Positions 13,640 through 54,652 of a stretch of 64,000 bases of DNA are shown here, one piece after another (the stretch's first letter is position 1; each line of letters starts with the position of its first letter). The notes beneath the pieces are model-generated. The model was not told the DNA's origin and searched no databases. It saw only the letters and a list, made by a program, of their open reading frames with translations. Made by a program: the position numbers and the translations under genes. Source of the DNA: Oopsacas minuta (lineage: Eukaryota; Animalia; Porifera); assembly GCA_024704765.1 (NCBI GenBank), contig JAKMXF010000321.1, positions 124,001 to 188,000 on the forward strand, given 5' to 3'.

Positions 13640-13884
13640 TAATTAGAATAATTAATTTTGTATATACATTTGTTTTAACACCTTTGTACAGAGGTTTTCT
13701 AGGTGATTGGCTGACACCTAAAGTGTCATTCAACAACCATGAAAGAGGACACAATGTGCTGACTGCTGTAATTAGTACAGAATCAAAATGATATATCCCA
13801 CTATGAATATTTATAATTCCAGTAGACTCCACTCAATAGTGTTATACAATAAACACAACAAACAAACATTTCCAAACAATAACA
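13640..13884. repeat. Copy 1 of the duplicated flank of the 684-aa ORF (contains a micro-inversion)
   Basis: 13640-13770 is the reverse complement of 16365-16494; 13842-13884 is a direct match to 16495-16537. Confidence 0.9.
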
Positions 13885-14214: not shown

Positions 14215-16269
14215 ATGGCAACAAACATGAGCCAGGTAACACCTTCAAAAGCTGAGAAGATGTTGAAGAAGTACCAGGATAGATTAAAGGAAATTCTGTC
14301 CATTGACTTACTAGAACTTACAGTGAACGAAATTTCCGAATTGTCTAGAGGGTTCCAGTTGGAAATGGAAACTCTAAATAGCAAGAAGGCCTCCGTACTG
14401 TCCACAGAAACACGTGTATCCTTGAAGGAACGATATACCGGAATAATACAGGAGTACAGGAATATTGCTAGGATACCAAATATCCTCAATGAAATGGAAA
14501 GAATTACAGCGACATATGACGTAAACATTGATAGAATTCTTAACAAGTTATCACCTCTCTACAAAGATTATGAATCTGTAATCTCCAGTAAAATACTTCC
14601 TGTCCCTCTCAAAGATTCATTCCAGGAGCCATACGACCAGCATTTAGAGAAAATATCTCTACTAATCATCCATGACTACCTCCCTACTGATATCAAAGAC
14701 AGCCTCTTCTACATAGAGAGGACTCTAGCAGAACCTTCCCTATACTCCCTAAACGGTCTCATCATGTGGAAGGAGACAGCTGAGCAAAAGATTCATAGAA
14801 TTCAGAATTTGCTAGTCCCTAGACTCCCAAAACCGATCGAGAGTGTGATAGTAAAGAGATACGAATCTCTGAGATTGAGACTGAAGGCAGAGATCTTAAA
14901 GATGAGGACTTATCCTATTCCAGAACCTTGGTGTTCATGTTGTATGAGGAAGGAAATGACACACTTGATTGAGGGAGAATTCATTTTCTATGTAGATCCT
15001 GAAATAAAGGAAGACATGAAACCAGTGAATCCATCCAAGAGAGACCTGCTTCCCGGGGGTATCACACGTCAGGAGTATGACATGAGGTTAAACAGACTCA
15101 ATATGGAGTATGCGATAGCTAGAGATGAGTTAGAAACCAGGAATGCAGATAGGATAGAAGAGAAATGCAAAGAGATGGAGGATTGTTATGCAGTTGTTGA
15201 GGAGAAGAGAGTGACTTTCACATTCAATGAACTATCTTTCCTGTACAGAGACGCTAGGTCTCTAGAATATCTCGTCAGGAAGAATAAGGAGGATAAGGAT
15301 TTGAAGGAAATATATGATATAATACAAAGAACGATCCGTCACTATTACGACAACAGAATAGACATTCCTTCATTTGCTATCGACACTGATAACGATCCCA
15401 TGTGGATAGCTCCACCCAAAGAAGAGAGGAACAGCCCTGTAGCATCTGGTGTTGATAGAGGTGGAGGAAGTCACCAATTAGATACACTAACTGATATAAT
15501 TGCGGTTATGAATAACGTAATAGTAGCGGATAGATACGGTGATACAGTCACACTCTACAGGGCTAGAGATCTTGCAGCTACAGTTTCGCATCATGATCCT
15601 CATTTAGCTACTACTCCTGTCTCATTGACATACTTCAAACAGTCCGTATTCGTGTGCTATACGAGTTTATTAGTACAATTCAGCTTAACATGGAAAGATA
15701 GTAAAGTACATATACCTGACATGAATCGTGAACACACCATCTCAATACCACAGGCTTGTTGTACCTCCCCTAACAGTAAGCATTTGTATGTGGGGACTCT
15801 TAAGCCCAGTCTCATCCGTATGCAGGTAGATCCTCTCCGTATAGAACAAGAATACCCACTCAATCCTATCTTGCATACCAAGATACCTAACAGGCATCCA
15901 TGGCTACAGAACATGAAGGCTGTTGGGGATTATGTTATATGTCTCTTCACAGGATCTCCCTCTCCTCTACAAATCTTCTCTCTAAAAGGAGTACTCATAA
16001 GGTCTATACTCACAGAGGATCAGATAGTAGGAGCATACAACTTCAACCTGTTCTATAATCCTATCACAGATGAATTGAGAATATACATATGTGATTTCTG
16101 GGATAATTCCATCAAAGTGTTTGGCCTGTCTGGTAAATTCATAGAAACAGTTTGTGAGACAGGACATGGACTGTGTCAAATATTCCGTCCCTCTTGCATA
16201 TTTATAGAAGACTCTGGCTATGCTACAGTTGGTGACATGAAGGAGGACAACTGTCTACAGAGGCTCTAA
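14215..16269 (+). CDS. Intronless 684-aa protein: helical/coiled-coil N-terminus, NHL-like beta-propeller C-terminus
   Basis: Long uninterrupted ORF; C-terminal IYICDFWDNSIKVFGLSGKFIETV..GHGLCQIFRPSCIFIED resembles NHL repeats. Confidence 0.7.
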   Translation: MATNMSQVTPSKAEKMLKKYQDRLKEILSIDLLELTVNEISELSRGFQLEMETLNSKKASVLSTETRVSLKERYTGIIQEYRNIARIPNILNEMERITATYDVNIDRILNKLSPLYKDYESVISSKILPVPLKDSFQEPYDQHLEKISLLIIHDYLPTDIKDSLFYIERTLAEPSLYSLNGLIMWKETAEQKIHRIQNLLVPRLPKPIESVIVKRYESLRLRLKAEILKMRTYPIPEPWCSCCMRKEMTHLIEGEFIFYVDPEIKEDMKPVNPSKRDLLPGGITRQEYDMRLNRLNMEYAIARDELETRNADRIEEKCKEMEDCYAVVEEKRVTFTFNELSFLYRDARSLEYLVRKNKEDKDLKEIYDIIQRTIRHYYDNRIDIPSFAIDTDNDPMWIAPPKEERNSPVASGVDRGGGSHQLDTLTDIIAVMNNVIVADRYGDTVTLYRARDLAATVSHHDPHLATTPVSLTYFKQSVFVCYTSLLVQFSLTWKDSKVHIPDMNREHTISIPQACCTSPNSKHLYVGTLKPSLIRMQVDPLRIEQEYPLNPILHTKIPNRHPWLQNMKAVGDYVICLFTGSPSPLQIFSLKGVLIRSILTEDQIVGAYNFNLFYNPITDELRIYICDFWDNSIKVFGLSGKFIETVCETGHGLCQIFRPSCIFIEDSGYATVGDMKEDNCLQRL

Positions 16270-16364: not shown

Positions 16365-16537
16365 TACAGCAGTCAGCACATTGTGTCTCTTTCATGGCTG
16401 CTGAATGACACTTTAGGTGCCAGCCAATCACCCAGAAAACCTCTGTACAAAGGTGTTAAAACAAATGTATATACAGAATTAATTATTCTAATTATTATAC
16501 AATAAAAACAACAAACAAACATTTCCAAACAATAACA
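16365..16537. repeat. Copy 2 of the duplicated flank
   Basis: Matches 13640-13770 (inverted) and 13842-13884 (direct). Confidence 0.9.
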
Positions 16538-43572: not shown

Positions 43573-44761
43573 TTATATAATTTGACATCTCTTGTCAGTT
43601 CGCATTCCATCACTCGTTGCTATGGTAGACATCCTTTGGTCCTCTTTAGTTCCAATTACACTTAATCTTGTTATATCAAATCTTTGTAGATAAATCGACT
43701 CTTTTGTACGATGGATTAAAGACTTTTCTCTTTCGATTTTGTAAATTTGCATTCTTGCATTTATAATGTGTCTTACAATTTCCGACACATTTGTGCCACT
43801 TTTAGCTGAACATTCGAAATAGTCACAGGCGCCAGTTTGGCAAAGTAGGCTTGTAATCTATAAGAATACACAATTCTAAATTCACACGTTTTTAGCCAAT
43901 AGAATTGCAGAGTTACTCACATCTTCTTGGTTGCAAGGTGGGCTAACTCGCCAATTGATTGGTTGATCTGCCATCTGGTGTTCTTTCAAATCTAGTTTGC
44001 ATCCAATTATATAGAGTGGCACATTTTTACACCTTCCATGAATCTCAGGGAGCCACTACAAGGTGTTAAATAGTTAGTTCCAGTTCCAATAATAGTAGTT
44101 CCATATTCAGAAATGTTTAAAATTTGATATTTTTGATAAACTTAAGTTATAATGCTCGTGATTTGATTGGCTACTGACCTTAGTAAATATGTTGTGGTAA
44201 GATTGAGGTGATGACAGGTCAAAACAGAGTAACAGAATATCTGTGTCAGGATAGGAGAGTGGTCTAATATGTGAATAGTTGTCGTCACCAGGAGTGTCAT
44301 ACATTGACACTTGTACCAGTCCCTGATTGCTCTCAATCTCTGAAGCGTAGTTCTCAAACAAAGTAGGCACATATCCCTATATAGTTCCGGTTATTAACAC
44401 CTCAAATAATGGCTCAATATTGCACGAAAGAATGTGATTTTTGAAATTTTGCAATCCGAGCACTGTTCCAAAATATCTACGATATGTTCTATACTTGATA
44501 GTTCCATTATTAGTTCCGGTTTATTAACACCTAAAATAGTGGCTCAATATTACACAGATCTAATTTTGAAATCTCTCGAATTTGCAATTTTTCAAAACAG
44601 AACCTAGACATTACTCTAGCAACACCTTTGTTGATTGGAATGCTGTTTACATTATTGTTTACCTCTGAAAATATTTGTTTACTGATTCTTATTAAAAGTG
44701 AAGATTTCCCGCAAAATTTATCTCCAATAATTACCAATTTTTGTTCAAATTTCTTTTCCAT
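43573..44761 (-). CDS. Atypical Rho-family GTPase A, 4 exons, CaaX CQII
   Basis: KLVIIGDKFCGKS; YVPTLFENY; DTPGDDNY; IIGCKLDL; YFECSAK; ends CQII*. Confidence 0.88.
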
Positions 44762-45226
44762 TTTCAACCAGAGAAGTGACAATATTTTCTATTCTTTATA
44801 GTTCTGATTATACATATTTCTCCTCAATTGTATAGTTCCCTATTGATATTTAATATTTCTCTATAGTCTGAATATTTACATAATTATTGTGTGTAATATG
44901 AATTTGATATATCTTCGCCATGTGGCACAAAATGGCTAGAGAGAGACACTTAAAGAGTGGTCTACTAAAATAAACCAGAGTTGGAATCGGGTCGGGGTCG
45001 GGTTCGAAGTTGATCAGTTCTAACTTTGTATACTCAATGATTAGATTCTATTTTATGAAAAATGATATTTACATTAGAAACATCATATGGAACTTTCATG
45101 ACCTCAATAGGACATTTTTCACTGTATCTGGAACTATAAACACACAAGTAGTTTATAGCAGATATAATATTTTCAATATTGTTATCCAAGGTCCATAAGA
45201 AATTTATGTGTAGTATATCTTAACTA

Positions 45227-45411
45227 CAGTAGAACTCGGATAAGACGTACCCCCTCGGGAAACAGAAATTAGTACGTCTTAACCGAGTGTACGTCTTATC
45301 CGAATATGTTTGCATTACAAATAATGATGACTGATATTTTAAGATATAAGAAATAGTACGTCTTAACCGAGTGTACGTCTTATCCGAGTACGTCTTATCC
45401 GAGTTCTACTG
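45227..45411. mobile_element. Intact 185-bp Tc1/pogo-type MITE
   Basis: Perfect 24-bp TIR CAGTAGAACTCGGATAAGACGTAC; TA duplicated at both ends; internal gtacgtctta.ccgag sub-repeats. Confidence 0.93.
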
Positions 45412-46637
45412 TATTGTTATACTTATCACGCCAAAATTAACACATTAGGTATAACAAAACTAGAGTCAATTCGGATAAGCCGATCCCATTTTCAGATTCC
45501 CCGAGGTAAATATGCATAGAAACGGATCTAACATCTTAGCCAACAAATTGTTTGTTGACCAGTGTAATCAGTACTAATTGGTTATTCGAGGGACAGAATA
45601 ATTCTGTTAATTGGGTTACTTCAGGACCACCAAGCCAGTTTGACCCGATTTGCAAAATTAGTTCTTGTCCTGACAGATGAGCATGTAGCCTAAGATCACC
45701 CCGGTGATCCTATTAACCGGAATCTATTGTAATTATCCTAATAAAGTGGAAGCTACACATTCCACAAGTGGGGTGTCAGGGACGCCGAACTATACTACCA
45801 TGATTCCCCCTTTGTGGGAGCTGGAGTGCGCTCCTTTCCTGAGTAAGGAGCGGGGGGTGGAGCGCCGAGTGCTAAATGCTCTGCTCGTTTCCAAATGCCC
45901 CTATTCGTGCAGGTGACACTATTGATATTATTTGTAATACACCCATAATGTAAATATCTAACATTATTTGTGGTATAAATAGTGTTTGAAACATTAATTA
46001 ACTGTGTATGAGCCAAACAACTCGCTTTACATTTGAGACTAAAGCAAATGTGTCTTTGAAATTGCAAAAATGTACAAATAAAGAAATACAAACAAATAAT
46101 CACAATACTAAATATTTCAAATGAGTTGTAATTCTATACTCGTACTTTTTGTCTATGTTTTAAAATGGAACTAATTATTCAAATCCATTTTTGCAAAATG
46201 CTTGATAATTCTTTTTGTCGGCGGAACATAGACCATACTTACCAACAACTTTTACACATCTCTACATAGTTCCATTATTAGTTCCGGTTATGAATTCACG
46301 TTATTACACCCCGAAAATATCCCGAAACATCGCAAAAATAGCGAATTCTCTGGATTTTCAATATTTTCCTCAGTATGAACTATAAAGTCAAATCTTGGGA
46401 TAATTGAGGGTAAATCACATTTTTGTTTATCTTAATTCTAACACAATAGGTGTCATAAACTCATAACTCATGTCAACAACAAAATTTATGTCCAATTCTC
46501 ATGAAGTTTCCCTAAATATGTGTTAGTTCCATATTGAGTATTCTTTTAACAGTATTCACATGTAATCACTAAGGATTAGGCCAATCAGAATTGAGAGTAT
46601 AAATAGAAGTTTGAATTACAAAATTTTTTAAATTAAA

Positions 46638-48023
46638 ATGAGTGAAATTCAATTTTCAGAGAAAAAATTGGTCGTCGTTGGTGACTCAAAATGTGGCAAA
46701 TCAGCTGTTTTGTATATGTTAGCCAAAGAACTGTATTTGGAGGTAAGACCACTAATATACAATTTTTTAAATGTATTTAATTGGAACTATGAATACGAAG
46801 TTTCAACGGTAATTGTTGGTTCAAATACGAGCGGTTTAAGCAAATATTTTTGGGTATAATTGAGTCATTATTCGAGGTGTTAATAACCGGAACTATATAG
46901 GGATATGTGCCTACTTTGTTTGAGAACTACGCTTCAGAGATTGAGAGCAATCAGGGACTGGTACAAGTGTCAATGTATGACACTCCTGGTGACGACAACT
47001 ATTCACATATTAGACCACTCTCCTATCCTGACACAGATATTCTGTTACTCTGTTTTGACCTGTCATCACCTCAATCTTACCACAACATATTTACTAAGGT
47101 CAGTAGCTTCTCCATCTCCTTAGCGGACCCATTTGGTCCAACTTATAGGGTCCCTAGGTGTCGAGACCCCAGTTTAAGAATCATATCTAACTTAATTACA
47201 AAATTTTAGTCAAATCTGAATTTAAGAATTCTGATTTTTGAATATGAAAGTAACGGAACTAATTAATGAATATGAAAGTAATGGAACTAATTAATGAATA
47301 TGAAAGTAACGGAACTAATTAATGAATATGAAAGTAATGGAACTAATTAATGAATATGAAAGTAATGGAACTAATTAATGAAAATTAGACTAACATTAAA
47401 ATTTTGAAGAATTATAAATATAGAACTTAAAGAATTGGAACTAACTATTTAACACCTTTTAGTGGATACCTGAGATAAGAGAGTACTGTCCTGGAGTACC
47501 ATTCATTATAGTAGGTTGCAAAAACGATCTCATCAATATGGAACTTAAAAAAGCAGATGATTATATTGTATCGGAACTAGCACCTACAACACAAGATGAG
47601 GTAAGTGTCGTATGTATATTTATGTCCTCTTTTCCTCGAAAAGGTGTTAAAATGTGTCCTTTATAGATGGCACAACTGTTGAGTCATACAGGGGCGGTTG
47701 ACTACTTCCAATGTTCAGCTAAATACAACTACAATCTGATTGGTCTATTTTCAAAAGCTGTTGACTCAACTTTTCATAGAAAAAGGAATTCTTCTAAAAA
47801 ATACAGAAATAGAACTTTATCAACAATTCAATCGGAACCATCTATATCTCATAGTTCCAGTTTCAGAAGGCGCGCATCCACTGACGTTTCACCCTACAAG
47901 AAACAGAGGATATATCGAACCAGTTATTCATCGTGTTTACCAACATTCCACAGGCGAAGACCTGTTGTTAACGATGATATATATTTTCGTAGCCAATCAA
48001 ATGGCAATTGTACCATTTTATGA
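46638..48023 (+). CDS. Atypical Rho-family GTPase B, 4 exons, basic C-terminal tail, CaaX CTIL
   Basis: KLVVVGDSKCGKS; exon 46901-47098 YVPTLFENY..DTPGDDNY; IVGCKNDL; YFQCSAK; ends CTIL*. Confidence 0.9.
47240..47379 (+). repeat. Intronic minisatellite, 5 x 28 bp GAATATGAAAGTAAYGGAACTAATTAAT
   Basis: Direct reading; no spacers between units. Confidence 0.92.
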
Positions 48024-49119: not shown

Positions 49120-49322
49120 ATGTGAATAATAGTGTTAGACATGAAAGTGTTAATATCTACTTTAGTTCCAGTATTACATGTGACTATTAAAACAGGAGGG
49201 GATATAACTTAAAATACAGTATATTCCAATTAATAGAGACACCGGTTAACACCTTTATTCCGCTAAAATGGGTCCAAATGGTCTGGTTGTCCCAATGTGA
49301 CTCTATTCAGAGTCTATTGTAT
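49120..49322. repeat. About 200-bp duplicated segment (MITE-B end plus flank); second copy at about 54332-54540
   Basis: tgtgaataatagtgttagacatgaaagtg..ctctattcag..agtctattgta is nearly identical at both sites. Confidence 0.85.
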
Positions 49323-54227: not shown

Positions 54228-54652
54228 TTTTATATATTTTTTGGATTTTAGTTTTGTTGTTTATTTATTTATGAATTTGTTGATATTTACGGACATCCTA
54301 AACTCCGTATTTCAGCAAAAGTATTAAATTGTATGTGAATAATAGTGTTAGACATGAAAGTGTTAATATATCTACTTTAGTTCCAGTATTACATGTGACT
54401 ATTGAAACAGGAGGGGATATAACTTAAAATACAGTATATTCCAATTAATAGAGACACCAGTTAACACCTTTATTCCGCTAAATTGGGTCCAAATGGCCTG
54501 CTGGTCCCGATGTGACTCTATTCAGCAGAGTCTATTGTATGTTATTTGTAATATAGCAACAAATTGCATGAAAATATGCCTACTTTTCTTAGCCAAGTAT
54601 ATTTAGTTTCTTATTACTATATAAAGTGGTATTATAGAACTGGAACTAATTA

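Follow-up and report, generated by a model that had tools for sequence, protein, structure and literature searches.

Close inverted paralogs are a known setting for gene conversion tracts of ~200-500 bp (PMC5714168; PMC3966223), and some of the described pairs come near to the locus presented here, two head-to-head Rho-type genes, A and B, of the glass sponge Oopsacas minuta. These genes lie in a stretch of 64,000 nucleotides (nt; contig JAKMXF010000321.1 of assembly GCA_024704765.1, positions 124,001 to 188,000 of the forward strand), hereafter the window, in whose numbering all coordinates are given, and their distinguishing feature is a perfect inverted repeat of 234 bp that contains exon 2 of both. 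Among the described systems, the poeciliid opsin genes LWS-1 and LWS-3 form a pair of inverted neighbours with recurrent conversion and within-species tracts of ~200-500 bp (PMC5714168). In Caenorhabditis, the inverted hsp16 modules, the collagen genes col-12 and col-13, and the fog-2/ftr-1 pair have likewise been read as cases of interlocus conversion, which reaches into introns (PMC3966223).

The Rho pair resembles LWS-1/LWS-3 in that the paralogs are close and inverted, and in that the duplication appears to be older than the species. In the opsins, the extent of the tract varies between species and functionally divergent parts can stay unconverted. However, LWS-1 and LWS-3 can be aligned throughout, with conversion over 13-42% of their sequence, whereas the sponge genes, which encode Rho GTPases and whose DNA is read in one species, are saturated or unalignable beyond an island of ~400-600 bp. 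With the Caenorhabditis cases the pair shares near-identical segments of adjacent paralogs that stand beside fully diverged flanks, functionally divergent regions being left unconverted, but those cases mostly homogenise whole open reading frames (ORFs) or large parts of them, whereas here one exon of four is concerned. A further comparison is offered by the ampliconic palindromes of the human Y chromosome, where intrachromosomal conversion from arm to arm preserves the identity of the inverted arms around a unique spacer, and where inversion polymorphism of the spacer is known. The arms of these palindromes measure kilobases to megabases and hold whole genes, whereas the arm of the Rho pair is 234 bp long and sits inside gene bodies that otherwise look unrelated. 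The conversion process itself is already known, and the Rho pair is a very clean further example of it.

The perfect tract and the two genes that carry it

Judging from the DNA, we consider it highly probable that the 234-bp tract arose by recent short-tract interlocus gene conversion between these inverted neighbouring genes. The gene models, which are predicted from sequence signals, have four exons each and stand head to head with their 5' ends 1876 bp apart: gene A, on the minus strand, would encode 238 amino acids ending in the CAAX box CQII, and gene B, on the plus strand, 265 amino acids ending in CTIL. All six introns are of the GT-AG type and in phase 0, and their positions match between the two genes. 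The arms of the repeat and the exons are given below, with the evidence for each in brackets; database searches were run exon by exon, with single exons as queries.

44170-44403, minus strand: arm A of the perfect inverted repeat, which is gene A exon 2 with 9 nt of the adjoining intron 2 and 27 nt of the adjoining intron 1 (exact match and genome search)
46874-47107, plus strand: arm B of the perfect inverted repeat, which is gene B exon 2 with 27 nt of the adjoining intron 1 and 9 nt of the adjoining intron 2 (exact match and genome search)
44663-44761, minus strand: gene A exon 1, 33 amino acids, P-loop GDKFCGKS (ATG and GT donor; Pfam Ras, E 1e-4; best solved structures Rho1/RhoA)
44179-44376, minus strand: gene A exon 2, 66 amino acids, switch I core, interswitch and switch II (Pfam Ras, E 1.9e-11; RhoA 34-95)
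43921-44055, minus strand: gene A exon 3, 45 amino acids, G4 motif CKLD and Rho-insert region (best solved structures RhoD and Rac1)
43573-43857, minus strand: gene A exon 4, 94 amino acids and stop, CSAK motif, tail and CQII (Pfam Ras C-terminal match)
46638-46742, plus strand: gene B exon 1, 35 amino acids, P-loop GDSKCGKS (best solved structures Rnd3/RhoE and Rnd1)
46901-47098, plus strand: gene B exon 2, same sequence as gene A exon 2 (exact match; RhoA 34-95)
47463-47600, plus strand: gene B exon 3, 46 amino acids, G4 motif CKND (best solved structure RhoA 99-126)
47667-48023, plus strand: gene B exon 4, 118 amino acids and stop, long basic Ser-rich tail and CTIL (ortholog fragment P0008, 62%, ends CSIL)

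The first-pass annotation of this DNA had reported that 44170-44403 is the exact reverse complement of 46874-47107, and that the match covers all synonymous sites of exon 2 along with short intron flanks. The two stretches indeed agree at 234 of 234 bases. With the gene models in hand, the tract is seen in both genes to take in the final 27 nt of intron 1, to run through exon 2 in full (198 nt), and to extend over the first 9 nt of intron 2. The repeat search lists the same pair as a 270-nt inverted repeat of 96% identity with arms 2398 nt apart, because weaker similarity runs on at the inner side of the arms. A DNA search of the whole assembly (61,460,524 bases, or 61.46 Mb, in 365 contigs) found two copies of the tract, which are exactly these two arms, and the tract is therefore not a dispersed repeat. 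No third paralog beyond A and B was found in the window or in the genome. The window, with 35.7% G+C and zero Ns, contains one other inverted repeat of at least 80 nt.

Within the tract, ~44 synonymous and 36 intronic sites show 0 differences, giving a 95% upper bound of ~3.8% for neutral divergence, as opposed to a pooled synonymous divergence (dS) of 1.45 in the other exons. For 198 consecutive matches, given a background rate of 0.55, the probability is ~1e-51, which excludes chance as the source of the exon 2 identity. Compared exon by exon, A and B differ as follows (dS and the non-synonymous divergence, dN, by the NG86 method):

Exon 1: amino acid identity 45%, nucleotide identity 59%, dS 3.0
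Exon 2: amino acid identity 100%, nucleotide identity 100%, dS 0, dN 0
Exon 3: amino acid identity 43%, nucleotide identity 51%, dS 2.2
Exon 4: amino acid identity 30%, nucleotide identity 49%, dS 1.1

With exons 1, 3 and 4 pooled, dN amounts to 0.67 beside the dS already given. These values agree with the strong divergence that had been claimed for the three exons from their P-loops (GDKFCGKS and GDSKCGKS) and CAAX boxes (CQII and CTIL). Elsewhere, local alignments score at the level of shuffled sequence (z -1.3 to 2.7), which applies to intron 3, to introns 1 and 2 in their 5' parts, and to 300 nt on either side of the genes, and a global alignment of the two loci collapses beyond the tract. 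Since synonymous and intronic sites are perfectly identical too, constraint at the protein level cannot give this pattern, and recent copying is required. The locus thus displays what gene conversion leaves behind, namely a sharp segment of high identity, identity at neutral sites, and paralogs that are older than the tract.

Identity of this kind could also originate in the assembly, if the copies of exon 2 were merely similar, or if one of the contexts were chimeric, through graph merging, repeat resolution or GapFiller. The published genome (365 scaffolds, ~61 Mb, 36% G+C) was assembled with SPAdes (k up to 99) from Illumina and Canu-corrected PacBio reads, followed by SSPACE, Pilon and GapFiller (PMC10280926). 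In such a hybrid assembly, 234 bp exceeds k and forms a repeat node in the graph, where small differences can be merged, and reads that map to both copies are of no use to Pilon for restoring them. However, merging could lift a very high identity to 100%, but it could not create an island amid unalignable sequence. Both contexts yield intact, in-frame GT-AG gene models, homology decays at both flanks in the manner of a natural signature, and the window is free of Ns, while PacBio reads and 150-bp pairs span 234 bp easily. We regard an artefact as the origin of the tract as highly unlikely.

Tract limits, older homology and the age of the paralogs

Outside the tract, similarity between A and B does not end everywhere at once. 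The following stretches are relevant to its limits:

44404-44439, minus strand: leftover homology in intron 1 of gene A, directly upstream of the tract (pairs with 46838-46873; ~72-76% by window; z 7.7 against shuffles)
46838-46873, plus strand: leftover homology in intron 1 of gene B, directly upstream of the tract (partner of 44404-44439)
44042-44130, minus strand: leftover homology over the final ~75 nt of gene A intron 2 and the first 14 nt of exon 3 (pairs with ~47394-47476; z 16.4)
47394-47476, plus strand: leftover homology in the last ~69 nt of gene B intron 2 and the first 14 nt of exon 3 (partner of 44042-44130)
47108-47393, plus strand: part of intron 2 specific to gene B and unalignable (z 0.2 against gene A intron 2; includes a minisatellite)

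Base by base, the 36 nt upstream of the tract match at 26 positions. At the far end of intron 2, the alignment of A and B comprises 44 nt at 75% and then 31 nt, the last bases of the intron, at 94%. The unaligned gap between the tract and this patch measures ~44 nt in A versus ~290 nt in B, where a minisatellite of 28 nt x 5.1 occupies 47239-47382, and the B-specific stretch is likely to be what stops conversion on that side. Decayed homology on both flanks suggests repeated conversions with a shrinking reach, in which earlier tracts would have been wider than the present one. As such, what sets the current limits looks to be the point at which homology has been lost, and not the exon itself. 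The first-pass annotation had proposed conversion limited to the exon; conversion between head-to-head paralogs stands, while its restriction to the exon holds only roughly, given that the tract enters both introns and that homology persists in the flanks at z 7.7 and 16.4. Of the eight exons, exon 2 has the highest third-position G+C (0.41 versus 0.21-0.37), which fits weakly with GC-biased conversion.

From these patterns we infer a repair mechanism and its recurrence. In one of the genes, DNA broken or nicked within or close to exon 2 would have been repaired with the inverted neighbour, 2.5 kb away on the same chromatid, as the template, probably by synthesis-dependent strand annealing without crossover. 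Copying would have ended where homology ended, which is 9 nt into intron 2, the point at which the introns turn unrelated; on the side of intron 1 it would have ended 27 nt in, within a patch of older, partly decayed homology. This latest event would be one of a series, the earlier conversions having covered the region between the end of intron 1 and the start of exon 3. Since then, insertions and indels (e.g. the minisatellite of B intron 2), together with divergence, would have cut the convertible island down to a contiguous 234 bp, and exons 1, 3 and 4 would have escaped conversion long ago and diverged to saturation. Exon 2, on the other hand, would have stayed similar enough for continued conversion because it is the most conserved part of any Rho protein.

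Additional evidence comes from protein fragments on ENA contigs (P0001-P0008), which we took to stem from glass-sponge relatives. When exon 2 served as the query in a word-based protein search, seven ORF fragments were retrieved, on contigs of 29-839 kb; they are 77-89% identical to the query and read on into intron 2. With exon 4 of gene B, one fragment was found, P0008, which is 62% identical over 97% of the exon and ends in CSIL; P0008 and the exon 2 fragment P0007 each lie on an ENA contig of 264,800 bases. The same fragment search with exon 4 of gene A gave no match, and in a scan of JGI metagenomes for relatives none of the 174 pattern matches came from one. Exon 4 of gene B is closer to P0008 (62%) than to exon 4 of gene A (30%), which implies that the duplication predates the split between these species, while exon 2, being 77-89% identical to that of the relatives versus 100% between A and B, must have been homogenised after it. 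Outside the tract, A and B are thus ancient paralogs, whose duplication took place before the tract arose. In the O. minuta genome, the Rho-like exon 2 that comes next shows at most 50% amino acid identity.

One of the relatives hints at within-species homogenisation of exon 2 as well. Fragments P0002 and P0004, each on an ENA contig of 297,969 bases, are identical over their first 47 residues, including a DNNY site at which all other species have DDNY, DDDY or DEDY. Past residue 47, P0004 turns into AT-rich sequence of non-coding appearance; the second copy in this relative may be truncated, split by a new intron, or partly converted over exon 2.

Whether conversion is also favoured by selection is a matter to which both the tract limits and the relatives speak. 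In the adaptive version, put forward in the first-pass annotation, identical switch regions would let the two proteins share effectors or regulators, while their tails send them to different places, and converted alleles would for that reason be favoured in exon 2 but rejected in other parts of the genes. The tract does coincide with the switch regions, and the remaining protein, including tails and CAAX boxes, is strongly different. Moreover, the tails appear to be under constraint, since that of B is 62% conserved in a relative, with the CAAX box kept, and the exon 2 fragments of the relatives are well conserved at 77-89%. However, a neutral island of homology that perpetuates itself, located on the Rho exon with the highest conservation, accounts for the pattern just as well, and the limits of the tract follow the loss of DNA homology and not the limits of protein domains, with the leftover homology being intronic. 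We therefore think it rather unlikely that selection is what maintains the conversion.

The geometry of the locus raises one further reading, a flip of the segment between the repeats that the first-pass annotation had also suggested, as the perfect 234-bp arms bracket both promoters and both first exons in the arrangement of an invertible switch. The segment that would invert is the following:

44404-46873: spacer between the perfect arms, 2470 bp, with both exons 1, the 5' portion of each intron 1 and a 1.9-kb divergent promoter region (defined by geometry)

A crossover between the arms would flip this 2.47-kb spacer and swap promoter and exon 1 between the genes, and since the introns are in phase 0, both chimeras would be in frame. 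The arms would then be kept identical by frequent exchange, as a crossover site, with the cassette flipping in some individuals or cells. If this were true, four proteins (two P-loops x two bodies/tails) would be built around one invariant switch module, and an early-branching animal would possess an isoform switch that works by recombination. Each context is single-copy in the genome, however, and arms of 234 bp offer little length for crossover to be efficient. Neither a recombinase nor a target-site feature was seen, and the identity can be explained without frequent flipping. Such a switch seems to us extremely unlikely.

Returning to recent and recurrent gene conversion, some points weigh against it. 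The evidence at the O. minuta locus is the sequence of one assembly, and as a SPAdes graph can merge a few differences between repeats, the identity of 100% may be overstated, e.g. from 98%. Recurrence is based on the decayed homology in the introns, which constraint on the 3' splice region could partly explain, and such constraint may contribute to the 94% patch. In the relative, finally, the evidence is one amino-acid site, on fragments known as protein only.

Two minor similarities within the locus should be mentioned beside the tract. Intron 1 of gene A has its 3' end repeated 130 nt further upstream (44391-44425 versus 44521-44555, 35 nt, 91%). We considered whether a decayed old exon 2 follows the upstream copy, but the 65 nt after it lack similarity to exon 2 (237 of 500 shuffles scored as high), and the copy at 44521-44555 is a small intronic duplication. 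The other similarity concerns 46256-46529, which was considered as a relic third copy on the minus strand. Compared with gene A over its exon 1 and a portion of the following intron, at an offset of exactly 1768 bp, it is the best of 58,451 ungapped offsets (z 5.8), with a perfect 24-nt block and a block of 17/18 over the P-loop codons. We did not retain it as a gene copy, as it lacks an open frame and its ungapped identity is only 44.5%; the likeness may mark a relic, or it may be due to chance aided by the word GGAACTA, which abounds in the window (see below).

Predicted properties of the two proteins

Both translations belong to the Ras superfamily by the Pfam Ras matches of their exons and by the G-domain motifs GxxxxGKS, the switch I threonine, DxxG, CKxD and CSAK. 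The Rho/Rac type follows from the top solved structure of every exon, which is RhoA, Rho1, RhoD, Rac or Rnd, and from the CAAX ends; the Rho insert was deduced from extra residues after G4 in exon 3. Exon 2 aligns with RhoA 34-95 and contains the YVPT of switch I, the interswitch strands, DxxG and switch II. The earlier statement that this exon encodes switch I and switch II needs a small correction in that sense: the core of switch I and all of switch II are present, but the first residues of switch I are located in exon 1.

In the P-loop, K-F (A, GDKF) and S-K (B, GDSK) take the place of the G-A of Rho1 (GDGA), and in switch II both proteins read DTPGDD where RhoA has DTAGQE. As such, the equivalents of RhoA Gly14 and Gln63 (G12 and Q61 of Ras) are replaced in both A and B, the former by K or S, and the latter by D. 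From catalysis in the Ras superfamily, and from Rnd and RhoH, it is known that loss of this glycine and glutamine predicts very slow or absent GTP hydrolysis. The replacements therefore predict the same for A and B, which are probably slow or non-hydrolysing, Rnd-like switches.

The likeness to Rnd/RhoE includes the substitutions at Gly14 and Gln63 in both proteins, a G4 motif of the form GCKxD, the GDSxCGK P-loop of B and its long C-terminal extension. Unlike in Rnd proteins, the CAAX boxes of A and B end in I or L and not in M, and Rnd ranks first for exon 1 of gene B alone, with exons 2 and 3 placing RhoA, RhoD or Rac above it. The resemblance of A and B to Rnd may be convergent. Exon 4 of gene B further contains an RRRAS motif and a basic Ser-rich stretch (47780-48010), which are kept in P0008, where the motif reads RRRAY. 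The tail of B may serve for regulated, phosphorylation-dependent targeting, reminiscent of Rnd proteins.

Other repeats of the window, and the bearing of the tract on Rho evolution

The word GGAACTA occurs 159 times in the 64 kb, 24-fold more than the 6.6 occurrences expected, and is the top 7-mer, above AT-rich simple words. Its wider consensus is AAnTGGAACTA[A/T], and the 28-nt minisatellite of gene B intron 2 has the word as its core; sites in and around the Rho genes include 44075, 44096, 44382, 44499, 44511, 46783, 46889, 47255-47367 and 47437. A role as splice or branch signal, which would have explained the conserved intron ends, was considered but is not supported: the word is equally dense within and outside long open frames, strand bias is not clear, and it lies no nearer to YAG than a rough estimate of chance predicts. 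A literature search for GGAACTA abundance found no paper.

The spacer between the arms gave no RNA gene matches in Rfam and tRNA scans. At 45225-45413 it holds an element of 189 bp with perfect 26-nt terminal inverted repeats and internal repeats of 15-17 nt. Among 365 first-look candidates, this element has at least 40 copies in the genome at 93-98% identity, which marks it as a young family of miniature inverted-repeat transposable elements.

The second inverted repeat of the window (13640-13747 / 16387-16494, 108 nt, 95%, arms 2639 nt apart) flanks an intronless open frame of 684 amino acids (14215-16269). Genome-wide it has two full copies and two partial matches, and it could represent transposon ends or another short conversion tract. 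A direct repeat of 158 nt and 96% identity (49153-49310 / 54368-54525) has its copies 5.2 kb apart, beside or within an array of G-protein-coupled receptor genes; these are its only two full copies in the genome, and it may be another short conversion tract.

The Rho pair shows how short a conversion island can get, with dS 0 in one exon and ~1.5 in the others, and the limits of the island are marked by decayed older tracts and an intron insertion. It also adds a case of interlocus conversion from a glass sponge, a lineage in which such data are scarce. At this locus, trees of hexactinellid Rho proteins and duplication dates will mislead when they are derived from exon 2 or from alignments of the whole protein. 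As a result of conversion, A and B combine one shared version of the switch I core and of switch II with P-loops, insert regions, tails and CAAX boxes that differ between them. If the sequence is a guide to function, the pair, which is probably deficient in hydrolysis, would constitute a natural domain-swap experiment on the contributions of the tail versus the switch regions.

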